A stretch of 57,766 bases of DNA from Andalucia godoyi And28 (Eukaryota; Protista; Jakobida). Positions 2,729 through 55,298 of this stretch are shown here, piece by piece. Position numbers and translations under genes: made by a program. The stretch's first letter is position 1, and every line of letters starts with the position of its first letter. A model generated the notes under the pieces. The model saw only the letters and a list, made by a program, of their open reading frames with translations. It did no database searches and was not told the origin of the DNA. The stretch covers positions 68,222-125,987 of the forward strand of contig VRVR01000014.1 of the NCBI GenBank assembly GCA_009859145.1. Reading direction: 5' to 3'.

Positions 2729-3847
2729 ATGTCTGAGCCTCGATTGCGATATGCGGTGATTCCAATTGCAGGTATGTGATCACTGGTGTCTTTACTTTTG
2801 TCTTTTTCTTTTGTCTATTTTCTTTTCCCCCTTACCGACTTGGCTCTTTCTGATGCAAAACGAAAAAATATTTTAATAATATGATTAGGGTTTGGGACAC
2901 GCATGTTTCCTGCTTCGAAGGCCGTTCCCAAGGCGCTTCTTCCGATTGTCCACAGAGGTTTTGCAAAGCCTATTCTCCACGTCATCATTGAAGAGGCTCT
3001 TTCGGCCGGAGTCGAAAAAATCTGCCTTGTGTGTTCTCCGTCGCAGATCGAGGAGGTAAAGGAGTACTTTTCATCGGAACCGCTCGATGTTTACCAGAAA
3101 AAGTTCCCTGAACAATGCCGGCAGCTCAGAGACATCTCGTCTCGTATTGCGTTTGCAATCCAGCCTGAAATGAAGGGGTTCGGGGACGCAGTCTTGTGCT
3201 CAAGAGACGTTGTTGGCACGGAACACCATGTGCTTGTCATGCTTGGCGACCATGTTTATACCTCGTCGGATGCCCAAGGCAGATCGTGTGCAAAACAGCT
3301 TGTGGACGCATGGACTTCCTGTGGCAAAGTGGGTTCCGCAACGTCGCTGGACACGTGTGCATTGCAGGATGTCCGTGTCAATGGCATTGTGAATGTCAGT
3401 CCTGTTCCCACAGCAGATCCAGATGTTGGCGCACGTGCAGAGGCTGATGCAGAGGCTGGGGCTGGTGCTGGTGCTGATGCTGCTTTTACTGGTGCCGGTG
3501 TTGGGGTGTTCCGGGTGGATTCAGGAGTCGAGAAACCGTCTGTCGAGTACGCAAAGAACAATCTGACCCCGTGTGGATTCCAGAACAAAGATGGAAGCAC
3601 TGAGCCGCTATTTTATTGCTACTTTGGAATGGATCTGCTGTCGCCGCTCATATTTGAGGAGCTGCAGTCTATGAAAGATGATCCTTCGCTGCGCACGCAT
3701 GGCGAACTACAGCTTCGAGACGCAATGATGCGCGTTGCGGATCGTGAACAGTTTTTGGGAGTCAGAGTCCAAGGAAAGAGACACGACACCGGTATGCCAT
3801 GCGAGTATGCACAGGCAATCGCTGCCATGGCTGCCGTTCCATACTGA
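2729..3847 (+). CDS. GalU-like (bacterial-type) sugar-1-phosphate nucleotidyltransferase, probable UTP-glucose-1-phosphate uridylyltransferase; 2 exons
   Basis: Exons 2729-2771 and 2889-3847 splice to MSEPRLRYAVIPIAGFGTRMFPASKAVPKALLP, restoring the nucleotidyltransferase GxGTR...PK motif. Further motifs are QPEMKGFGDAV, MLGDH, GELQLRDA and RHDTG. About 333 aa. The substrate is inferred. Confidence 0.85.
2772..2888 (+). other. Spliceosomal intron (117 nt) in the GalU-like gene
   Basis: GTATGT donor, T-rich body and TTAG acceptor. Removal joins AVIPIA-G-FGTRM in frame and rebuilds the conserved motif. Confidence 0.92.
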
Positions 3848-40867: not shown

Positions 40868-42694
40868 CTAGGAGGTGAGCATCTCCCGCGTCTTGGATTC
40901 CTCGTGGATGAACTCTGCAGCCATCTTCCCGACAAGGTAGCAAGCGGCTTGTGTGTTTCCCGATACGACGTGCGGAAACACGGAAGCATCTGCAACGCGA
41001 ACGTTTTTCACCCCTCGTACACGCAGGTGGGCGTCAACGGCACGGCCCAGAGAGCATGATCCGCTTGGGTGCCAGGATGACACGACCGTATCCTTGATGT
41101 AGGCCGACAGTGCCTTGTTTCCAGAACTCGACAGCCAGCTCCGAAGTGGAAACAAAACTTTCCCACCAAACCCCGGCGATTCAACAATTCTCTGCGACAG
41201 CTTCAATGCTGCAGCGATGGTCTCGACATCGCGCTGGTCATCCATGTAGTTTGGATCAACAAGAGGATACTCCCAGTGGTTTTTTGATTTCAGTCGAACG
41301 CTTCCGCGACTGTATGGCCTGCCTTGGATTGTGAAGATGATAGCAAGATGGGAAGTAAACCAAGAAATGAACAGTGAAAAGAACCAGCAAAGCAGACGGG
41401 AAAAGAACAACAGGAAGTAGTGGAGCAGCAGGAACTGTTGGTCCGACAGCGCCGAGCGCAGAAACGGCAAGTTCGAAAGTCGGTCTGTGATGACGGATGG
41501 GATGGCATGACGGAAGGAAGCAGAGCCGTCCACGCAGACTATCTCGACAGATTCCGCCTTCTTACTGCTTGGAATATCAACAAACGAAAACGACACCGCA
41601 TCCTGACCGTTTGTCAGGGGATTCTTTCGACCCGGAAGTTTCTCCTTGCTCCACGTGTAGAGCCCGCAAAGGACGTGGTCGTGCAGATTCTGTCCAACAA
41701 ACTCGTTGCGAGCAACAAACGGAACGTTCTGCGATTGCAGTTCGTCCAAGGGCCCAATTCCGGACAGTAACAGGAGCTGCGGAGTAAAAATCGCTCCAGC
41801 AGCACAAATCACTTCTCCATTCTCAGCCAGCTGGATCCGCCTCGAAAGGCCTTGGATCCCGTGTTCTTTGGTTTGGGTTGAGCGGAACTGGCTGCAGAAC
41901 TTACTCCACCACGAAGACTTCAATCGCTTCCTGTGCTCTGCTTCTGTGTCCATGACATGAACTGCAACGGGTTTCAGTTCCGAGTTGAACTCAATCTTGA
42001 CCGCTTTGCAGTTTGTCCAAACATGGATGTTCTTATCCGGGATCGCCGGCGAATCTTCGTCGTCTTTGCGATTGAACACTGCGCGACTTGCGCAATAATG
42101 GTCGAAGGCGTTCACCCGCGACGGCTGCTCTTCTCCAAACGAATAGATTGTGTGGCTTGATCCCCCGACGCACTCACTATTGTAGGAATCGACTTTGAAG
42201 AGTCGTTCTGGATCCGTCTCCGCTGCCGCTTTGACGTACTTGTCTGCAAGCCAGGATCTTCGCGACCCTAAGGACGTAACAGACAATGCATGTTCCCCGA
42301 GATGCGGAAACTTGGATCGAATTGCATCAAACTTCCATTCAGGCGCATGGATTTCGTCCGCCCACATATCATAGTCCTCTTTCAATCCGCAGACAAACAT
42401 TCCTGCGTTCGTCGCTGTGCATCCCCCAAGAACGCGAGCCTGAGAAATCGCAATTCGGCGACCGTTCAGTCCTTTTTGTTTGGTCGTGATCACATCATAG
42501 TCAATAGAGCGGTTTCCAAAGAGCGCCGTCCATTTTTGTGGATAACACACGTTCTCGGCAGTCGGTGAATCCAGCTGCTGCACAGACGGCCCAGCTTCAA
42601 GAACTAGTGTTTTCTTTGTCGGAAATGAGTAGGACAGATGGCCTGCAGCTGCAGATCCACCAGCACCAGACCCAATAACAATAAAGTCAAACAT
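40868..42694 (-). CDS. GMC oxidoreductase (choline/glucose dehydrogenase-like flavoprotein)
   Basis: FDFIVIGSGAGG (ADP-binding), ARVLGGCTATN, AAGAIFTPQLLLLSGIG, GQNLHDH, SWHPSGSC and DASVFP...GNTQA. Confidence 0.93.
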   Translation of the reverse strand: MFDFIVIGSGAGGSAAAGHLSYSFPTKKTLVLEAGPSVQQLDSPTAENVCYPQKWTALFGNRSIDYDVITTKQKGLNGRRIAISQARVLGGCTATNAGMFVCGLKEDYDMWADEIHAPEWKFDAIRSKFPHLGEHALSVTSLGSRRSWLADKYVKAAAETDPERLFKVDSYNSECVGGSSHTIYSFGEEQPSRVNAFDHYCASRAVFNRKDDEDSPAIPDKNIHVWTNCKAVKIEFNSELKPVAVHVMDTEAEHRKRLKSSWWSKFCSQFRSTQTKEHGIQGLSRRIQLAENGEVICAAGAIFTPQLLLLSGIGPLDELQSQNVPFVARNEFVGQNLHDHVLCGLYTWSKEKLPGRKNPLTNGQDAVSFSFVDIPSSKKAESVEIVCVDGSASFRHAIPSVITDRLSNLPFLRSALSDQQFLLLHYFLLFFSRLLCWFFSLFISWFTSHLAIIFTIQGRPYSRGSVRLKSKNHWEYPLVDPNYMDDQRDVETIAAALKLSQRIVESPGFGGKVLFPLRSWLSSSGNKALSAYIKDTVVSSWHPSGSCSLGRAVDAHLRVRGVKNVRVADASVFPHVVSGNTQAACYLVGKMAAEFIHEESKTREMLTS

Positions 42695-43038
42695 TTTTGT
42701 TTTTTAAATTAGTGGGATGGAATCGCTAGATATGGTGCGCAAAGTGTTTGGCAATAGAATAAGACGTGTTTATCGAATTCTGAGCCTTGCGTTGACGGAC
42801 ACACGCAAAACAGGGTCGGAGGAAGGGCCGCTCGCATACGACAGTTGTTTTTTTTCTTTCCGGTCGAATGCGCAACAAGCACCGAAACAGGAGTCCAGGC
42901 TGGAGTCTGTCGTACTGCATATCTCACGGATGGTTTAAAGGACGCTCCCGCTTATTCGACTGCCTTATGCTTTCGTCTCGATGCGTTACTTTCACACTTT
43001 TTCTTCTTCTTATTATTATTTTATTTTGAATTACCTTT

Positions 43039-43069
<31 letters not shown>

Positions 43070-43126
43070 GTCTATCTGTCTATCTGTCTATCTGTCTATC
43101 TGTCTATCTGTCTATCTGTCTATCTA
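43039..43126. repeat. (CT)n-(TCTA)n-(TCTATCTG)n compound microsatellite
   Basis: Directly visible immediately upstream of the carboxylesterase ATG. Confidence 0.95.
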
Positions 43127-43153
43127 CTGAAGCTTTCTTTGTTATATGTGAGA

Positions 43154-44929
43154 ATGACTGCCAAGTTTACCGTTTTCATGGTGGTTGTGCTGGCCGCAAT
43201 GTGCTCGGCGTTTGCGGACCCGTCTCTGATTGTGCGGACCTCGTCGGGATTGTACGAAGGCATCACGGCTCCGAACAATTCCCAGGTTTTCCGCTGGACT
43301 GGAATTCCTTTCGCTGCTCCCCCCATTGGTAACTTGCGCTGGAAGTCTCCGATGCCGTACAACGCCACCGACTTCACTACCGTCCGATCTGCGAGTTCCT
43401 TTGGAGCATCCTGTCCGCAAGTCAACTACTACAATCCATCGGTGACTGCGTTCATGTCTGAAGACTGTCTTTCGTTGAACATCTGGTCTCCAGTCCATCC
43501 GTCGAATGTCAGTACCTCCGAACCTCTGCCGGTCATCTTCTGGATGTACGGAGGAGGTTTCTTTGAAGGTGGCACGGTCATTCCGGACTACGATGGCACA
43601 AACCTCGTGGCAATGCGCAAGTCTGTTGTGTTTGTGTCTGCAAACTATCGTCTTGGTGCGTACGGTTTTGCGTCGTCCACGAGTCTGGATGCCGAATCTG
43701 GACCCCGAAATGCTTCTGGATTGTACGGAATGGAGGACCAGCGGGCCGCCATGCAGTGGGTTCGCGACAACATCCGCAAGTTCGGAGGAAACCCCAACAA
43801 GGTGACACTCATGGGAGAATCGGCAGGATCATTCTTTGTCTGCTTCCACCTTGCCTCTCCACTCAGCTCGGGCCTGTTTCATGCAGGAATTATGGAGTCC
43901 GGCAGCTGCGAACTCTTGGACGACTTCTTCAAAGTTCACAAGACCCTGAAGCAAGTGACTGACTTGTTTGCCTCGAAGACTCGCTGCGGATCACCGAGCA
44001 ACCTTGCCTGCCTCCGTTCTCTTTCGATTTCAGAGATTGCAAACGCAACCATCGACATGAATGCGAATGTCTTGCTTGGTGCCAATGCGTTTATTCCCGA
44101 TCTCGATGGGTTCAATCTTCCGAAGTACTCGCAATTCGGCATCTCGTTCTCCAGTACATTCTCCTCGGGATCCTTCAATAAGGTTCCGCTTCTGATCGGA
44201 TTTAACCAACATGAGCAGTCATTGTTTTTGCTGGGAGACTTCGTCGGCAACCCAGCGAATGTCACTATCACTCAAGCCACTTATGATGCAATCGTCGCTT
44301 CCCAAGATGGAGGAGATCCACGTGTGAGGAATTACTACTCCGCCGAACGATTCGCAGCCTGGGATCCCCAACAACCCTTGCGCGGCGCGGTGGTTGCCTT
44401 GCTCACGCACAAGATCTTCGGCTGCCCGTCCCGCAGGCTGGCTACCGCGGTCTCGCAGAACGGGGTGCCAGTGTACATGTATCAGTTTAATCACGCGCCA
44501 GTGAATGGAATCTACGGAAACTACTCTTGGATGGGAGCGTACCACTATGCCGAAATTCCGTTTGTGTTTGGAAACCCGAATGATGAGTTTCATTACGTTC
44601 GGTCCTTTACTCCCTCCGAAGCTGTTTTATCCAAGCGTGCGATGGGCTACTGGCTCTCATTTGCAGAATCCGCAGGTAATCCGAATTACCTCACGACCGA
44701 AAGATCCATCAACGACCCTACTTTCGTGACCGCTTGGCCGCCCTACAATTCTGACACGGACCTGACCCTGGAACTTGAGGCCCGCGATGCGCTTCGAGTG
44801 CGCCACAAATTGCTCGCAGAACCGTGCAGCATCTGGGACGATTTGCAGCCTGCAAGATCCAGTGCCTTCTCGGCAGCGGCCGTCTGTTCTTCTCTGTTCA
44901 TCAGTGCGCTGTTGTCGCTGTTCTTGTAG
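43154..44929 (+). CDS. Type-B carboxylesterase (secreted, probable GPI anchor)
   Basis: Signal peptide, GIPFAAPPIGNLRW, SEDCLSLNIW, YGGGF, NYRLGAYGF and nucleophile GESAG. Acid residue in FNQHE, His in GAYHYAEIPFVFG, and a hydrophobic C-terminal tail. 591 aa. Confidence 0.93.
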   Translation: MTAKFTVFMVVVLAAMCSAFADPSLIVRTSSGLYEGITAPNNSQVFRWTGIPFAAPPIGNLRWKSPMPYNATDFTTVRSASSFGASCPQVNYYNPSVTAFMSEDCLSLNIWSPVHPSNVSTSEPLPVIFWMYGGGFFEGGTVIPDYDGTNLVAMRKSVVFVSANYRLGAYGFASSTSLDAESGPRNASGLYGMEDQRAAMQWVRDNIRKFGGNPNKVTLMGESAGSFFVCFHLASPLSSGLFHAGIMESGSCELLDDFFKVHKTLKQVTDLFASKTRCGSPSNLACLRSLSISEIANATIDMNANVLLGANAFIPDLDGFNLPKYSQFGISFSSTFSSGSFNKVPLLIGFNQHEQSLFLLGDFVGNPANVTITQATYDAIVASQDGGDPRVRNYYSAERFAAWDPQQPLRGAVVALLTHKIFGCPSRRLATAVSQNGVPVYMYQFNHAPVNGIYGNYSWMGAYHYAEIPFVFGNPNDEFHYVRSFTPSEAVLSKRAMGYWLSFAESAGNPNYLTTERSINDPTFVTAWPPYNSDTDLTLELEARDALRVRHKLLAEPCSIWDDLQPARSSAFSAAAVCSSLFISALLSLFL

Positions 44930-48232: not shown

Positions 48233-48984
48233 TGTCAGATAACGAGAAGGGAAAATGGTGCAGCGATAACAACAATGAGGGAGAGAGAGAGAGAGAGAAA
48301 AGAAATCGGTTAAAACGAAAAACAGCAACTAGAATCGAAAAAAAAACCCCCAAAAACCCCACAAAACAACAGCAACAAAAAACCAAAAACACGATGATTT
48401 TCCTCTTCTCTTCTTCTTGTGACTGTGATATTTGGTGTCGGTTGCAAGAAGAAGCCCCTGGTTTGCAAAGGAATAGAGAAAACACGACAATATCGCAAAT
48501 TCACAAAAATATTATTTTAAAAAATAAAAATATTCAGTATAAACAATGTAAAAAACGCAAGGTACTAAAAGATGGAAAAACGAAAGAACGGAAAATAGGA
48601 AACGCAAAAGGCGCCTCCGGGTCTCCTTCAGTCTCTTAAGAAAGGGCAATGGGCGGCGTTGCAGAAACGAAAAAAACGACTCTCTGTGAAACGTTAGTGT
48701 ATCTACAGCAGCTACAGCACCATGCTGTTTTTTTTACATTTATTTTGCATTTTGGATTTTTGAAGTACATTTCGTAGCATGAATATGGTATTTACTGATT
48801 AAACAACGATTAGGATTGACTATTGGGGCAGAGATTGAAATTGGTGCAATCGCGAGTACTCGAAAGAAGCTTTGAAAGGAGTCGCAGCCTTGGCATTTTT
48901 TGAATTTTTTGAAATTTGGGGAAAAAAAAATTCTGGTTAATAATAATGCACCAACATGATTAAACCAATAGTAAAAAGACATAC

Positions 48985-49137
48985 GGAATTAAGGTGGGAT
49001 TGGGTCTGCAGGCACTCCGATAATTGTGAGTTGGCATTGGAGACGTCTTTGGAAATTCGATCGAGAATTGCATTCATTCGTTTCAATGAATCATGAACAA
49101 CTTCGGCTTCTCTCAACGTAATTTCCACGCTCTCCAT
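48985..49137 (-). CDS. Probable first exon of a small coiled-coil protein (3' exon unresolved)
   Basis: MESVEITLREAEVVHDSLKRMNAILDRISKDVSNANSQLSECLQTQSHLNS is heptad-like and ends exactly at a GTATGT donor (48984, phase 0) followed by AT-rich sequence. Confidence 0.4.
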
Positions 49138-49537: not shown

Positions 49538-49590
49538 AGAAGAAGAAGAAGAAGAAGAAGAAGAAGAAAAAAAAAAAAGAAAAAAAAACG
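49538..49590. repeat. (GAA)n plus poly(A) purine tract upstream of the RtcB-like gene
   Basis: Directly visible. Confidence 0.9.
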
Positions 49591-49600
49591 AGAGAGAGAG

Positions 49601-50713
49601 ATGACGGACATAACGTTAATATCGTACGCAAATGTTGATCAAGGCACCATCAACCAAGTGAACCAGGTAAAGCGGTCTTTGGGAACGAATGCGGTAGCAG
49701 TGGCGGTGATGCCGGATGCGCACCAGGGCGACGAGATTCCGAACGGGGTGGTATTTGAAACACGAGTGCCCGTCCCCCGGCTTGTGGGAACTGATATCGG
49801 TTGCGGAGTGTCGCTGTTCGACGCTTCTTTCATGACAGAACAGGCGCTGGCGCAAGTCAAGGCAGAAGATGCACATGCGTTCACAAGCAGATTTCAGCAG
49901 GTACGAATTCCCGCGGATTTCAGCAAAGATCTGCCCTTTTCGGAAGAGCTCGGGAGTCTCGGTGGTGGAAATCACTTTGCAGAGATTGTGCGAGTGGAGT
50001 CGGTGGTGGACACAAAGCTGGCAGAACAAATCCATCCAGGGATGCTTCTGATGATGATCCACAGCGGCTCGAGAGGGTACGGCGCACATGCAAGCAAGGT
50101 GCCTCTCGCTCGGTACATGGAGAATCAGGACGCCGTCGTCGACTGGGCAAAATTAAATCGGCAGCTTGTTGCATATCGATTCAAGCACGCACTGACTGTG
50201 GAGCCGCTTCCACAGCCCCACACGCACGAGGTCCCTGAAATCCTGTTGAACGTATCGCACAACTGGGTCGAGCAGACGACGGCAAGCACCTTTGTTCACA
50301 GAAAAGGAGCCGTCTCCACGACCACTAGCAAGTGGGACTCTGCATGCTGGGTGCACAACGGCAAGAAGCTGATGGTCCTGCCGGGATCCCGTGGGTCTGC
50401 ATCCTTTCTGCTAACCGCCGTCGACAATCCAGAAGTTCACAACGCTTGCTTGAACTCGATTGCTCATGGAGCAGGGCGAAAACTGAAGAGATCGGACTGC
50501 AAAGCGCTCTTCACTGACTCCAAGTACAAGCAAAGCTCCATCGAGCTGGATGACGGAACCACCGCGACGGTCTGCTGCGCCAATGAAAACCTGAAAGTGC
50601 AGGAGCATCCAGATGCATACAAGGATGTGACTGCCGTCGTCGAAGACTTGGTAACGTTTGGTTGTGTCAATGTAGCAGCGGTTCTCCGTCCTGTTTTTAC
50701 CTACAAGGATTAG
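49601..50713 (+). CDS. rtcB2: RtcB-family 3'-phosphate RNA ligase, short bacterial RtcB2 (release factor H-coupled) type
   Basis: MPDAHQG, VGTDIGCG, LGSLGGGNHFAE, IHSGSRGYG, SHNWV, VHRKGA, LPGSRG, SIAHGAGR, HPDAYKD and LRPVFTYKD. Intronless, 370 aa. Confidence 0.88.
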   Translation: MTDITLISYANVDQGTINQVNQVKRSLGTNAVAVAVMPDAHQGDEIPNGVVFETRVPVPRLVGTDIGCGVSLFDASFMTEQALAQVKAEDAHAFTSRFQQVRIPADFSKDLPFSEELGSLGGGNHFAEIVRVESVVDTKLAEQIHPGMLLMMIHSGSRGYGAHASKVPLARYMENQDAVVDWAKLNRQLVAYRFKHALTVEPLPQPHTHEVPEILLNVSHNWVEQTTASTFVHRKGAVSTTTSKWDSACWVHNGKKLMVLPGSRGSASFLLTAVDNPEVHNACLNSIAHGAGRKLKRSDCKALFTDSKYKQSSIELDDGTTATVCCANENLKVQEHPDAYKDVTAVVEDLVTFGCVNVAAVLRPVFTYKD

Positions 50714-50880
50714 TGCTTGCACAATAATTGTTTTTCCTTGCGGTCGCGGACGTTGATGATTTTTTGTTGGCTGCAACCATACTGCAATAGAAGACAGACG
50801 CCAAATTTCCCCCAGCATTGCGTTTTGCAGAAAGACCAAGAAAGATGGGAAGACGGGAAAAGGAAACACAACCAGAAGTT

Positions 50881-53800
50881 TCAAAAGAAAGGGGGTGGGA
50901 ACCAGATTCCGGACGCATTTGGATGAAAAGCACAGCAACGGCGATACTGCAATGCCTCCGCCATCGACACCGGCTGCTTGCTGGTCAGCCAAAGTATGCT
51001 CCCCACAATCTCCTGCCCGGAAATGGCAGAGTGCTTTGCGAACCCATCCCATGTTCTGCCAGGAACAGAACATCCAGCTGTTTTCACGACGTTCCGGCGT
51101 CGGCGCAGGTGCAGCACTTTTAACAATTCTGGGGATTTTGCGGCTTCCAAAACCCCTCCGATTGCCACCTTGTACTCCTCTGTAATGCTTCCACATTGCG
51201 CCATCGAACGTAAACAAACAAGACCTTCTGGATTTCCAGCGTAGAGCAAAGCCCGCGCCTCCAGAAAAGCAACTTCAGACAGAGAAATCGGAAAATCCAA
51301 GATTGCAGGAACAGGAAACGTGGACAAGAACGCACTGAGATGTGTAAAATCTGCGCTGCTGTGCGGATCACTTCCGCAGCCATGAAACAGACACTGTCGA
51401 AACGCAGCCGACAAGAAAGCGCAAATCTCCCACCATCCCATCTGAGAAGCCTTCACCGCACCCAGAAAATACGAGTAGCACAAAAGCCGTGCTCGCAGAG
51501 GCGGATCGATGGCGGTAAGATCCAAATTGTCCAGAAACACTGCATACTTTCCAACCTCCGTAATGTCTGGAACAAAAATGCCATCGGACGATTTCAAGAA
51601 CCCAGAGAACAGCTGGGTGATTTTTTGGTCGATGAGTACACCTGCGTCCGTGAATTGCCTGCCTAGCATCAGACATCGGACGCGGTCCATAGTGCGCGTC
51701 GCACTGCGTTCTTCATCGAGGTAGTTTCCAGACGAACGCAGGCCAAACGAGCGATATACTTCCCAAATCGCTGACGGATCTTCCGGGACCGTGGATCCTG
51801 GCGCAATTGTGGTGTACCGCACGCACATGAACTCGGTCAAGAAACGACCGTTTGGGACTGTATCATGAAGCGCATATGCTGTGACGTACAAATTCAGCAT
51901 CAAACATCTTGCAGAGATATCCTGAATGAGGCGTAGAGGATACGATCCCTTTCGCAGAGTGCAGTTTGCGACGGCCCACGAAAGAAACAGCTCGTTTGCG
52001 TTGTGTAAAAGCTCAGTCGCGCCATGAACGTCATCAACTGACAACCGATAGCTTGCCGCCCAAATTGGTTGATAGCGATGCTTTTCAAAATCGGATGAGT
52101 CTGTAACAACCGATAGCACAAGCGGAGAAATCGAGTCATAGGACTTTTCAATGACAGCAGCTGGAATGCTATTCAGGGAGGCCTCTCGTTTCAGCGAGGA
52201 AGAATTTGGAGCTTCCACAGCATCCACGACTTTCGGAGACGAAATGTCACTCGTCGCAGAAGAGTCGAAGCTTGGCCCGGCAGCAGAAGAAGACGGGGAA
52301 TTTTGACCTTGGGCTGCTGCAAACGGAAATCGGCCAAGCATATCGCTCACAGAAATGGTAAAAGCATCGTCGAAATCACCTCGCTGACGAAGAAGCGACA
52401 CTGCCTGCGGAACATGTCCAGACGCAGCCAAGAACAAGGAGGGATCAAACGGCTCTTGGTGCGTAGGATGCTCGAGCACATACTCGGCGTATCTACGCAT
52501 CAGATCAGACCACAGTTGCATAGAATGTCCTGGAGCGATCATCAAGGCAGAATGCCAGTCTCCACATTCGATGCAGATTTTGCAAAACTCCGGAATGTTT
52601 CCCGCACACAAAAACATTTTTGCCGCGGCTCGAAGTCTTGTTTCTCGCTTCCGATCTGCCAGAGAAACCTTCAAGGATCGAGACAAAACGCTACTGAGGA
52701 CATTCTTCTGCTGCACCAGCTCACGGCCCCTCGCTTCCAGCGTCGGACCGACTTCATTGACGTGCAGCACTTCTGCTTTTGAACTCCTTGCGATGCGAGA
52801 CGTGGTCGACTCCAACAACTCCATCAAATCACGTGTTCCAAATGGAAGATCGAAAAACTCGAGAATTGTCTTGAATTTTGTGGCAAGATTCGAATCCGTC
52901 CCTGCGGAAGTCTTGAGGGTCTTAATCAGATCAAGAGAATTCGAGCCCGACATCTTCATCTGGGGAGGTACAACATCACCAAGGATGTTCATGTCGCTCG
53001 AAATGCCATTGAATACCGTTCGTTGGGTGCTCGTGAACATCGCCACAAGATCAGCTTCCGATTTGATCGGGAACATCGTAGACAAACCAAACTTGAGAGC
53101 CTCTGCCATAGCAGAAAGTTGAAAAAACCGCGTTGTCGTATCCCGCGACGTGGATGCAAACACGAACGGTCGTTTGGCATGCGAATCCAGCCCGTAAACA
53201 TCAGAATGGTGCTCGTGAGTCATTGACACGCATTTCCGATCCGCAACGTTCCAGCAGCGGATAGTTCCATCCCAGGAGCCAGAGAGCAATATCCACGGAA
53301 TCTCATGATGCCAGCAGAGTGCCCTCACGTTGTCAACATGTCCAACTAGACACACGCAACTGCCATCTGCAACATTCCACACCCGAACTGAGTGGTCGTT
53401 GGAGCCGGAAACCAAAACGCCTGGAACCAACGGATGGTACTCCACGTTGTAAACAGCATCCGTATGTCCACGCAGCTCTCGAACTGCAGAATCTGTCTGC
53501 GCGTTGATGTCGTAGATCCTCACCACGCCGTCAAAACAACCCACGGCAATAATGTCTCGCTGATGAAAGTTCCACGCAATTCCAAAACAAGGACGCGCGT
53601 GAGTATATCGCCGCACCAGAGTGCCATTTTCTCGGAAGACGCAGCATGTGCCATCTTTGGAACAGCTTGCCAGCAGGTTGTACGAAGCATTCGGATGAGG
53701 ATCCCATTCGACGCGAAACACGGCGTCCTTGTGGACAGCATGCCTCCCAACCTGGGTACCTTTCACAGCATCCCAGATGATAACGTCATTGGTGGACAGC

Positions 53801-55298
53801 GCGCCGGCGACGAGAGGCTTGCCTCGGCACCAGCTAACACTGTAAATAACGGCCTTCACTCGGACGAACTCCAGGACGAGTTCCATTGAAGCGATGTCCC
53901 ACATCTTCACCGACCCATCGTACGAGCTTGTCAGCAGGGTATCGGGGTTCGAGGGACTAAATCTGCAATCAAAAATAGTTTCGGTATGCCCAGCTTCCGA
54001 GCGATAATCGTACCGTCTGCGACGTGTGTTGTACAAACCGATGGACCCGTCGGAGAACGTGCACAGCATACTGTTATGCTTGTCGTCATAGACAGTGTTC
54101 TGAAAGGCAGAATTGGCGAGCTTGAACGCATCAATGGCGCTCTTTTGCGATACATTCCAGTACCGCAAAACGCCGGTCCGCTTGTCGGCTGAGAAGAAAT
54201 TACCCGGCTCACTGGGAATCCATGCAAGAGACTGAATTCCACCGGCAATCCTTTCAAAATGCTTGATCTCAGACCCGGAAGAGATATCAAAGAGAACGAC
54301 GTGGCCCGAGCTGAACGCAATGAGGATGTACGTGTCCGACAAAGGATCCCACTGGATATCCTCCACCTTGCAATTGCCAGAATCCACATCTGTTCGAGAG
54401 TCGAGCACTGCAGATCGAAACAGCGTTCCTCTCTTCAAAATCGACGAATCCATCGTAACGACGGAGCCGTCTTCGAAGCCTCCAGCAAGCAAGTTCTGCC
54501 TTCTGGGATGCCATCGCAGAACTCGCAGCGGTGCATCGATATCAAAATTCGCGGCCCCAAACATGCGAGTAGGATAGTCCCAGATTCTTATCACGCCCTT
54601 CACAGACGCAGATGCAAAGCAGGAAGGATGAAACGGGTTCCACTCCAGCACAACAGGATCGTGCAGTTCGGTGCTCATGTCCCCAATCTGCAGACCCGTA
54701 TCCAAGTTCCATACTCGAATTGTCTTGTCATGTGCACACGTCGCAACTATGTTCGGGCTCATTGTGCACCATGTAAGACTAGTAATGTTCTTATGATGCG
54801 CATGAATCACCCTTTCCAGTTGAAATGTATCCAACGAGTACACATAGATTGCAAGAGAGGAACAATAGGCAAATCGGCCTCCTCCAAATCCGCACACACT
54901 CTTGTTCCAAATTTGACATCCAGCAGGAATTATATGCTACACATGGCATTGAGAAAAAAAGAAGCAGAGCAAGGCAAGACACGACAGAAGAAGACGAAAA
55001 ATACACGAAAACAACAACAACAACAATAATAATAATAATAATCATTATCATCATCATCCACGATTAGCACTCTGTGGTTTGGCAACATGCATCTCAAGGC
55101 GCGACGAACAATCTTTAATTCCGTAAAGTAGGGAAGAAGAAAACAACCAATAAACACAAAAGAAGAAAGGAGGAAAATCGCACATACAAGTTGTTTCTAT
55201 GACACACGAAAAAAATAATAATAAAGTAAAATAAAATTAGCACACTCGAAGATGCGATGGAAATGAATTTAAAAAAGCCAGAAATACGTCCATACCAT
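50881..55298 (-). CDS. WDR17: WD repeat-containing protein 17; 3 coding exons (55298-55296, 55196-55188, 54936-50881)
   Basis: GHTETIFDCRFSP.NPD.L.TSSYDGSVKMWD and RFAYCSSLAIYVY match WDR17. The spliced N-terminus MKQLHIIPAGCQIWNKSVC matches the conserved KQ...AGCQxWN start. About 1355 aa. Confidence 0.9.
54937..55187 (-). other. WDR17 intron 2 (251 nt, phase 0)
   Basis: Minus-strand GTATGT donor at 55187 and GTGTAG acceptor ending at 54937. The in-frame TAG at the acceptor closes the long ORF upstream, so splicing is required. Confidence 0.8.
55197..55295 (-). other. WDR17 intron 1 (99 nt, phase 0) directly after the start codon
   Basis: Minus strand reads ATG|GTATGG...CATAG|AAACAACTT. Confidence 0.7.

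Follow-up and report, generated by a model that had tools for sequence, protein, structure and literature searches.

The RNA ligase RtcB2 of E. coli repairs the 30S ribosomal subunit but not tRNA (PMC9304027), and can act without its partner PrfH, since RtcB2 alone repaired colicin-E3-cut 30S and 70S particles in vitro and its overexpression rescued growth (PMC13166195). Eukaryotic counterparts are also on record: Tian et al. 2022 reported 98 eukaryotic RtcB2s, with PrfH confined to bacteria, and predicted 40S repair as their function (PMC9304027). The genes of Capsaspora (XP_004345156) and Spizellomyces (XP_016608226) already bear the NCBI label "release factor H-coupled RctB family protein", and we found RtcB2-like genes without PrfH in Capsaspora, chytrids, Selaginella (XP_002984977), green algae, one malawimonad and giant-virus-like contigs; the eukaryotic cases include those of Hyaloraphidium (KAI9032177), Auriculariales (KAH7097153), Bryopsis (GMH36946) and Gefionella (EP00698_P006342). 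The role of such eukaryotic ligases is the question on which a gene of Andalucia godoyi bears; the accessible parts of the A. godoyi genome paper and of the diplonemid RtcB tree paper hold no statement on an RtcB2-like gene in Andalucia. Since the 98 cases of Tian et al., a eukaryotic RtcB2 lacking PrfH is no longer new, contrary to what a preliminary description of this gene might suggest; the Andalucia gene is a divergent further case and not a new class of system, and with it the distribution of the RtcB2 type now reaches the jakobids (Discoba).

The gene lies in a 57.8-kb stretch of A. godoyi DNA, the whole of which was analysed and is here called the window. It is an open reading frame from ATG to TAG, compact and intronless as first described, with no in-frame start between the preceding stop and the ATG. 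The gene and its immediate surroundings, in window coordinates, are as follows.

49538..49600, + strand: host-type tract of (AGA)10, poly-A and (GA)n in the 5' flank/UTR, abutting the ATG (sequence)
49601..50713, + strand: RtcB2-like RNA ligase coding sequence, intronless, 370 aa plus TAG (ORF; PF01139; AlphaFold2; Foldseek)
50714..50880, no strand: 167-bp spacer from the RtcB2-like stop to the stop codon of a convergent WD-repeat gene (ORF positions)
50881..54897, - strand: WD-repeat (WDR17-like) ORF of 1338 aa, ANDGO_04516 (protein match)

The gene is integrated in the nuclear chromosome of A. godoyi. Eukaryotic genes flank it on both sides: the 1338-aa ORF is 100% identical to the EukProt entry ANDGO_04516 of this species, its next-best matches include proteins called WDR17 in NCBI/UniRef, and genes for a calpain, Tdp1, PIF1 and a kinase are also found in the window. 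AGA/CTT microsatellites akin to the 5' tract recur across the whole window, and the GC3 (0.61) and RSCU r (0.60) of the ligase gene both fall inside the range of its neighbors. The eukaryotic neighborhood and host-style repeats noticed in the preliminary description are thereby borne out. No tRNA genes were found in the window.

The encoded protein matched the Pfam RtcB profile (PF01139) with E=2.2e-58 and 198.9 bits against a gathering cut-off of 27; its AlphaFold2 model (pLDDT 90.8, pTM 0.91) displays a confident RtcB fold, and a Foldseek search with this model recovered RtcB entries as the only significant hits (E 1e-24 to 1e-17, TMq 0.61-0.77). In a HMMER alignment, P. horikoshii D95, C98, H203, H234, H329, H404, N202 and D65/H67 are matched by Andalucia D65, C68, H125, H154, H220, H289, N124 and D39/H41, respectively, and the catalytic columns are invariant among 120 relatives. 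The features along the coding sequence are listed below, some of them shared with the sole close relative, the metagenomic protein P0002.

49709..49729, + strand: MPDAHQG motif with D39 and H41 (P. horikoshii D65/H67) (alignments)
49793..49807, + strand: DIGCG motif with predicted metal ligands D65 and C68 (P. horikoshii D95, C98) (alignment)
49961..49975, + strand: GGGNH motif with N124 and H125 (P. horikoshii N202, H203) (alignment)
50060..50077, + strand: HSGSRG motif with H154 (P. horikoshii H234) and R158 (alignment)
50090..50116, + strand: site of a lineage-specific deletion, about 16 residues short relative to other RtcB2-like proteins, common to P0002 (alignments)
50258..50263, + strand: HN motif with H220 (P. 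horikoshii metal ligand H329) (alignment)
50315..50368, + strand: longer lineage-specific loop STTTSKWDSACWVHNGKK in the HRKGA-PGSRG interval (alignments, model)
50465..50503, + strand: HGAGRKLKRSDCK, with H289, the predicted guanylylation histidine (P. horikoshii H404), R293 and R297 (alignments)
50600..50626, + strand: QEHPDAYKD, a variant of the EEAPEAYK motif (alignments)

The metal- and GMP-binding motifs reported as intact at first reading were all located (PDAH 38-41, DIGCG 65-69, GGGNH 121-125, HSGSRG 154-159, HN 220-221 and HGAGR 289-293), as was the LRPVxTYK terminus, which reads LRPVFTYKD (residues 362-370). The protein is an RtcB-family ligase with every catalytic motif, and ligase activity is predicted for it by homology.

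Between these conserved elements the protein has several peculiarities. At the MPDAHQG site a lineage-typical HQGDEIPNG stands where the RtcB2 consensus has HPGKxPVG; the deletion of about 16 residues falls after HSGSRG; and the STTTSKWDSACWVHNGKK loop, modeled by AlphaFold2 with lower confidence, exceeds its counterpart in bacterial RtcB2 by about 12 residues, P0002 alone having it too. The GRKL variant within HGAGRKLKRSDCK is common to P0002 and the giant-virus-contig clade, and parts of QEHPDAYKD recur elsewhere, EHP in P0002 and Gefionella P0352 and QEH in the viral-contig protein P0004. The best NCBIfam matches, NF007153 and TIGR03073, are both below threshold (225 bits where the cut-off is 407, and 180 where it is 271.8, respectively). 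As the deletion and loop expansion are without a bacterial RtcB2 counterpart and these scores fall short of the cut-offs, the substrate specificity of the enzyme may have shifted.

With respect to its placement within the family, the protein reached 152 bits with E. coli RtcB2, 98.6 with RtcB1 and 64-87 with the solved canonical RtcBs; gaps made up 29% of the alignment columns with E. coli RtcB1 and 18% of those with E. coli RtcB2. Its architecture is the compact one (about 360-380 aa, free of the RtcB1 and canonical insertions). Canonical RTCBs, by comparison, are about 480-505 aa long with family insertions and group with archaeal and eukaryotic enzymes, and the Andalucia protein yields only fragmented alignments with them; the 481-aa archaeal RtcB aligns in just three blocks, with about 80 aa missing between 113 and 193, in keeping with the observation that the large insertions of the approximately 500-aa RTCB are lacking. 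Kimura distances are 1.54-1.68 to E. coli RtcB1 and DpRTCB1 and 1.2-1.35 to RtcB2-like proteins. In the first neighbor-joining (NJ) trees, whose sole outgroup was E. coli RtcB1, the Andalucia protein sat in a basal ladder of long branches, possibly through long-branch attraction; the addition of four further outgroups settled its clade membership. With the resulting five (T. thermophilus, P. horikoshii, zebrafish RTCB, E. coli RtcB1 and Diplonema RTCB1), the RtcB2-like set including the Andalucia protein was split from the outgroups, together with three divergent bacterial sequences, in 195 of 200 bootstraps, a result of a distance method only. The phylogeny called for at the outset therefore sets the protein apart from canonical RTCB and RtcB1, and of the original designation "RtcB2-type" the RtcB2-like clade stands, while strict RtcB2 membership, given both NCBIfam cut-offs, does not. 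The sequence evidence supports its identification as a divergent RtcB2-like ligase, a long-branch outlier, rather than a canonical eukaryotic RTCB.

Close relatives are rare. Among about 15 billion proteins, P0002 (locus L001, ENA ERZ27258666) is the sole close relative, with 42-46% identity and 73-92% NJ support for its pairing with Andalucia, and an exhaustive representative protein search for closer ones returned it alone. A DNA pattern for the lineage-specific HGAGRKLKRSDCK had no matches in the metagenome and viral collections, and a profile scan of JGI metagenomes gave 36% identity at best. Other eukaryotic RtcB2-like proteins are 34-38% identical to the Andalucia protein, and bacterial and viral relatives 28-36%. 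With one relative at 42-46%, comparative inference for this protein is limited. Beyond P0002 its position is unstable: NJ joins it to Gefionella and the eukaryotic P0358 with 40% bootstrap. A profile from the eukaryotic set scored it at 276 bits and one from the bacterial set at 244, a comparison that is uninformative because the outgroups lean the same way.

A feature of bacterial RtcB2 is its association with PrfH, and, as the preliminary description held, the two are commonly encoded together, with prfH directly downstream of rtcB2 in 62 of 80 named bacterial relatives. In E. coli the pair forms a ribosome-repair operon, rtcB2-prfH, of which strain K-12 keeps just a natural remnant. The Andalucia gene has no adjacent prfH; a tblastn search of the window with two PrfH proteins gave no match, the best fragment (E 0.05) falling within the WD-repeat (WDR17-like) ORF, in agreement with the earlier failure to see such a gene there. 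PrfH is likewise absent at other eukaryotic loci (a fungus, Bryopsis) and at the viral-contig loci. In light of this, and of the repair of 30S and 70S particles by RtcB2 alone, PrfH-independent action of the Andalucia ligase is plausible.

We propose that the protein probably carries out cytosolic, GTP- and Mn-dependent repair of endonuclease-cut RNA, perhaps of small-subunit rRNA, a reading in which we place moderate confidence with regard to activity, location and substrate alike. By homology, His289 would be guanylylated in the presence of Mn2+ and GTP; the enzyme would open any 2',3'-cyclic phosphate and then pass the GMP to the RNA 3'-phosphate; and attack by the 5'-OH at the opposite end of the cut RNA would then seal the break. 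The favored candidate substrate is a nick in the decoding site of small-subunit rRNA, by analogy with the decoding-center nick that E. coli RtcB2 specifically reseals in the 30S subunit, in which case the splitting and rescue of stalled ribosomes might fall to the eukaryote's own factors in place of PrfH. We know of no eukaryotic ribotoxin or rescue factor that matches the predicted 40S repair. Nor, as Tian et al. also noted (PMC9304027), is any ribotoxin documented to nick the decoding site of eukaryotes in vivo.

The origin of the gene is a separate matter. It had been taken for a horizontally acquired ligase in a probably bacterivorous protist, but a lineage-specific acquisition from bacteria is not supported by the data: bacterial identities do not exceed about 34% and are spread over many phyla, the composition of the gene has been ameliorated to host values, and the nearest sequences are the metagenomic gene, whose contig is AT-rich, and, more weakly, those of a malawimonad and another eukaryote. 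The occurrence of PrfH-less RtcB2 genes in other eukaryotes and on giant-virus-like contigs likewise leaves unsupported any recent transfer from a bacterium straight into Andalucia. A single bacterial donor could not be assigned, as the best 80 named bacterial genomes (28-34% identity) belong to Proteobacteria, Bacillota, Planctomycetota, Actinomycetota and Myxococcota. The sequences offer weak hints of a donor among other protists or giant viruses. Delivery of the gene to Andalucia or its ancestors by a giant virus, instead of direct transfer from a bacterium, would accord with the best full-length matches (P0004 to P0006, 35-36% identity), PrfH-less genes on AT-rich contigs of 42-434 kb listed as viral by IMG/VR, and with the signature residues exclusively shared with Andalucia and P0002, of which the viral clade has the most (11, where 124 control groups have a median of 1 and a 95th percentile of 4.85). 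We nevertheless regard this route as unlikely, given a bootstrap of only 9% for the Andalucia-viral grouping, the best NJ tree with its union with Gefionella and another eukaryote at 40%, and a viral status of the contigs taken solely from the IMG/VR listing and composition. Quite doubtful, too, is the more sweeping idea that the genes of Andalucia/P0002, Gefionella, and the N-terminally extended opisthokont and green-plant forms descend from one ancient eukaryotic acquisition, an early PrfH-independent ligase for small-subunit rRNA repair lost by most lineages, of which the Andalucia protein would be a stripped-down core possibly exchanged with giant viruses.

Returning to function, a rather improbable alternative to rRNA repair is that the protein serves as the housekeeping ligase of tRNA splicing (and HAC1/XBP1-type splicing), in place of canonical RTCB or Trl1. 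The residues of RtcB catalytic chemistry are all intact, the HRKGA-PGSRG loop matches that of canonical RtcB in length, and an altered substrate could account for the divergence from RtcB2; against this, the protein lacks the canonical insertions and groups with the RtcB2-like set and not canonical RTCB, E. coli RtcB2 fails to join tRNA halves (PMC9304027), and fungi and plants with RtcB2-like genes splice their tRNAs via Trl1 (Tian et al., PMC9304027), which makes the family accessory in those lineages.

Import into mitochondria, for repair of mitochondrial tRNAs or of the mitoribosomal small-subunit rRNA, which is unusually bacteria-like, appears very unlikely. The bacterial-type 30S subunit is the native substrate of bacterial RtcB2 (PMC9304027), A. 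godoyi mitochondrial translation is the most bacteria-like, including tmRNA-SmpB (PMC7050145), and other Discoba do import an RtcB into mitochondria, but of the RtcB1 clade (PMC12699882), to which the Andalucia protein is unrelated by NJ. Against import, RtcB is absent from the accessible text and supplements of the paper on the curated A. godoyi mitoproteome of 864 genes (PMC7050145). Residue for residue and without extension, positions 1-30 match the N-terminus of the bacterial proteins, a structured region (strand 4-6, helix 14-30 in the model), and the first 40 residues, with three acidic and two basic ones, are not presequence-like in composition. Hence the lack of a targeting presequence is upheld, and of the cytosolic or mitochondrial ribosomes first suggested as targets the latter are disfavored; we infer that the ligase is likely cytosolic. 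Finally, a bacterial contaminant, chimeric assembly or decaying non-functional relic is hardly credible, for although the RtcB2 family is chiefly bacterial and no close relative occurs among other sequenced eukaryotes, host genes and microsatellites are contiguous on both flanks within tens of bases, codon usage is host-like, bacterial identities stop at about 34%, and neither the ORF nor any catalytic residue is disrupted, the fold being confident.

The best explanation of the locus is an RtcB2-like ligase long resident in the nuclear genome and consisting of the catalytic core only, with neither PrfH partner, N-terminal accessory domain nor targeting extension. Canonical RTCB enzymes work with archease and complex partners. 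Canonical RTCB/HSPC117 and archaeal RtcB (PDB 7p3b, 8odp, 1uc2, 4dwq) have the same fold and catalytic residues as the Andalucia protein, but at about 20-22% identity, with the canonical forms 110-135 aa longer (TM-score normalized to target about 0.5) and in another clade. The discoban mitochondrial ligases (Diplonema RTCB1, kinetoplastid, Naegleria) combine an RtcB1-type sequence with a presequence, and the Andalucia protein has neither. Its resemblance to E. coli RtcB2 (WP_000528869, strain RM10466; Tian et al. 2022; Maviza et al. 2022, 2026) extends to length (about 370-380 aa), catalytic motifs, the LRPVxTxK C-terminus and clade, whereas it differs in being a nuclear eukaryotic gene of 31% identity without adjacent prfH, with the 16-residue deletion and 12-residue longer loop. 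The viral-contig genes (P0004, P0005, P0006, P0009) are likewise compact and PrfH-less with the GRKL, QEH and H[QE]G signatures, but at 35-36% identity they are ordinary RtcB2 members that score about 350 bits on the bacterial profile, against 244. P0002 has the deletion, the long loop and both signatures, HGAGRKLKRSDCK and QEHP[DE]AYKD, in common with Andalucia, but is a frameshifted gene on a single 4-kb metagenomic contig of 30% GC and low coverage. The eukaryotic PrfH-less homologs, like the Andalucia gene, are nuclear, have eukaryotic neighbors, belong to the RtcB2-like clade and have predicted functions only; most of them, however, are about 450-540 aa long, with a conserved N-terminal domain (about 100 aa, a weak DCX/ubiquitin-like match) that is absent in Andalucia, six such domains used as tblastn queries having found no match in the window. 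Without this accessory domain and without introns, the Andalucia protein is the most minimal eukaryotic version found here, and so a convenient construct for biochemistry.

The RtcB-family gene of Andalucia is real, and the preliminary description of it as a compact ORF with intact family motifs was correct. Pfam RtcB (PF01139) matches its product with E=2.2e-58.

Features of the RtcB-family gene, its product and its downstream neighbor
49601..50713, + strand: RtcB-family CDS, a single ORF of 370 codons from ATG to TAG
50881..54897, - strand: WD-repeat (WDR17-like) ORF, 100% identical to EukProt ANDGO_04516 of Andalucia godoyi
Protein residues 38-41: PDAH motif
Protein residues 65-69: DIGCG motif
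Protein residues 121-125: GGGNH motif
Protein residues 154-159: HSGSRG motif
Protein residues 220-221: HN motif
Protein residues 289-293: HGAGR motif
Protein C-terminus: LRPVFTYKD

Between the ATG and the preceding in-frame stop lies low-complexity AGA/poly-A/GA sequence that contains no other start codon; a hidden N-terminal extension is therefore absent. In HMMER alignments the motifs fall on D65/H67, D95, C98, N202/H203, H234, H329 and H404 of P. horikoshii RtcB, which we take from established RtcB enzymology to be the two-metal site and the guanylylated histidine, and the catalytic-motif columns are invariant across an alignment of 120 relatives. With an alignment of 120 relatives as input, AlphaFold2 returned a confident model (mean pLDDT 90.8, pTM 0.91), whose matches in the PDB are RtcB structures only (E 1e-24 to 1e-17). 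Residue conservation and the predicted structure together show an intact catalytic core in a confidently modeled fold.

The RtcB gene is convergent with the gene for ANDGO_04516 downstream, 167 bp away; after that protein, the latter ORF best matches proteins from Naegleria, other protists and animals, several of which bear the name WDR17. The window also has ORFs for a calpain, Tdp1, a PIF1 helicase, a protein kinase, a carboxylesterase and a GMC oxidoreductase, in a compact, almost intron-free layout with genes on both strands, which agrees with the published description of the ~20 Mb A. godoyi genome (PMC7050145). The RtcB start codon is directly preceded by (AGA)10, poly-A and (GA)n, and microsatellites of these kinds also occupy intergenic regions elsewhere in the window. 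The GC (0.54) and GC3 (0.61) of the gene, as well as its codon usage relative to the other window genes (RSCU r=0.60), lie inside the host range or at its edge. Given these host neighbors, host microsatellites and host-like codon usage, together with the observation that bacterial copies are at most ~34% identical to the Andalucia protein (among the best 80 named bacterial relatives), the sequence makes it very unlikely that the gene is a bacterial contaminant or part of a chimera. Both its seat in a eukaryotic chromosome and the absence of PrfH from the 57.8-kb window stand as originally claimed.

Elsewhere in the window, the WD-repeat ORF encodes 1338 aa when read from GTG, its first start codon, as against 1355 aa in the EukProt model; the annotated N-terminus thus lies outside this ORF, which suggests that there is an upstream exon or a different start. 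Upstream of the RtcB gene, a spacer of 1.27 kb contains a 66-aa ORF (48937..49137, - strand), whose coiled-coil CCDC167-like match is weak (E=5.9e-4, below cut-off) and which may represent either a genuine small gene or the first exon of such a gene. The GMC oxidoreductase and carboxylesterase genes adjoin on opposite strands at 40868..44929; an 8-bp repeat, (TCTATCTG)x11, at 43039-43125 lies in the 5' portion of the long ORF for the carboxylesterase and precedes its Pfam-matched region, and translation probably begins downstream of this repeat.

We then considered the class of the enzyme. Its top NCBIfam models are both RtcB2 models, NF007153 (225 bits) and TIGR03073 'release_rtcB' (180 bits), yet the respective curated cut-offs, 407 and 271.8 bits, are well above these scores. 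It is 31% identical (152 bits, 18% gap columns) to E. coli RtcB2 from an intact rtcB2-prfH locus, versus 28% (98.6 bits, 29% gap columns) to RtcB1, the product of K-12 rtcB, and it matches solved canonical enzymes in fragments at 64-87 bits. As prfH occurs immediately downstream in 62 of the best 80 named bacterial relatives, the family that these hits define is Tian et al.'s PrfH-coupled RtcB2. In a first neighbor-joining tree with RtcB1 as the sole outgroup, the Andalucia protein was part of a ladder of long branches at the base; with T. thermophilus, P. horikoshii, zebrafish RTCB and Diplonema RTCB1 added as outgroups, the split grouping it with RtcB2-like sequences was recovered in 195 of 200 bootstraps, all trees being neighbor-joining with Kimura distances only. 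The RtcB2-type identity first proposed is thus borne out by phylogeny, and the sequence relationships argue that the protein is an RtcB2-clade enzyme, albeit a divergent outlier within the clade. Among 80 metagenomic relatives (L092-L171, from JGI and ENA) prfH was present within the examined flanks in 26, against 62 of the 80 named bacterial genomes; many of the soil and peat contigs may carry eukaryotic or viral PrfH-less copies or be too short for prfH. A probe spanning the K-12 rtcB2 remnant (ykfJ) and truncated prfH (L009 3468-4203) is at least 80% covered in ~2000 of 5426 complete E. coli genomes, and the intact pair is kept in other E. coli, such as strain RM10466 (L011).

In very large protein searches the sole relative above ~40% identity is P0002 (42-46%), encoded on a 4-kb metagenomic contig of 30% GC, and pattern and profile scans aimed at metagenomes and viral contigs yielded no closer sequence. 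The two proteins pair with 73-92% support in neighbor-joining trees and have in common a ~16-residue deletion after HSGSRG, a loop ~12 residues longer before PGSRG, HGAGRKLKRSDCK and QEHP[DE]AYKD. The P0002 gene (L001 2938-3946) is split into two frames near 3206-3216 at a contig coverage of ~5.6x, so that either an error in sequencing or a genuine frameshift could account for the split; close by is a weak RING-finger gene.

The placement of this pair within the RtcB2-like clade is unstable across trees: the best joins it with Gefionella and P0358, a relative whose contig carries clearly eukaryotic genes, at 40% support (120/300). A separate compact PrfH-less clade (P0004 to P0006 and P0009) is found on AT-rich contigs of 42-434 kb listed as viral by IMG/VR. 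It has 11 exclusive signature positions in common with Andalucia and P0002, where the median was 1 and the 95th percentile 4.85 among 124 control groups, and its grouping with the pair received 9% bootstrap only. Contigs of 27-32% GC that are listed as viral and bear compact PrfH-less RtcB2-like genes (L172-L174, IMG/VR UViGs; L002/L092, the 434-kb JGI contig Ga0310810_10000005; and L093) look like giant viruses with an RNA-repair ligase; the neighbors of the L002 gene are ankyrin-repeat, PRPP-synthetase and DUF5850 genes. On these sequence affinities, the Andalucia gene may have common ancestry with other eukaryotic or viral copies. Because of this possible kinship, its host-ameliorated composition and the lack of an identifiable donor, a recent direct transfer from bacteria into a bacterivore is not demonstrated.

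Based on RtcB enzymology, His289 would be guanylylated by GTP with Mn2+, the GMP would be moved onto an RNA 3'-phosphate, and attack by an RNA 5'-OH would then seal the break. The ribosomal decoding site is universally conserved. As E. coli RtcB2, moreover, acts specifically on the nicked 30S subunit and leaves tRNA halves unjoined (PMC9304027), we favor small-subunit rRNA as the candidate substrate by analogy, although the lineage-specific indels could have changed the specificity. The missing PrfH would pose no functional obstacle, since E. coli RtcB2 alone repairs colicin-E3-cut 30S subunits and 70S ribosomes in vitro, with PrfH only speeding the repair of translating ribosomes (PMC13166195). 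The bacteria-like mitoribosome of A. godoyi makes a mitochondrial role attractive; however, such a role is less likely than a cytosolic location, which we favor because the N-terminus lines up with the structured one of bacterial proteins and does not resemble a presequence, and because RtcB is absent from the paper on the curated A. godoyi mitoproteome, within the text and supplementary material covered.

Tian et al. reported 98 eukaryotic RtcB2s, mostly from fungi and plants, found PrfH to be confined to bacteria, and predicted repair of the 40S subunit for the eukaryotic enzymes (2022, PMC9304027). We recovered genes of this kind from Capsaspora, Spizellomyces, Hyaloraphidium, Selaginella, an Auriculariales fungus, Bryopsis and the malawimonad Gefionella; for several, NCBI already uses the name 'release factor H-coupled RctB family protein'. 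The genes of the fungus and the alga contain introns and have eukaryotic neighbors, and no PrfH was found within 8 kb of them. About 80 of the best 150 cluster representatives have an N-terminal extension of ~100 aa, which in named eukaryotes is a conserved domain of about 70-100 aa. The domain resembles a doublecortin/ubiquitin-like model weakly (PF25510, E=3.8e-4, under the cut-off) and goes unmentioned in the papers surveyed. Its carriers include Capsaspora, chytrids, Selaginella, a basidiomycete and Bryopsis (proteins P0253, P0264, P0244, P0250, P0021 and P0033; loci L005 8001-9482 and L006 8001-10002). Unlike these extended proteins, that of Andalucia is without the domain, and nothing resembling it is encoded anywhere in the window. 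As partner-less eukaryotic RtcB2 is already known from the literature and from database annotation, the Andalucia gene is not the first of its kind; rather, it adds an unusually divergent and minimal example.
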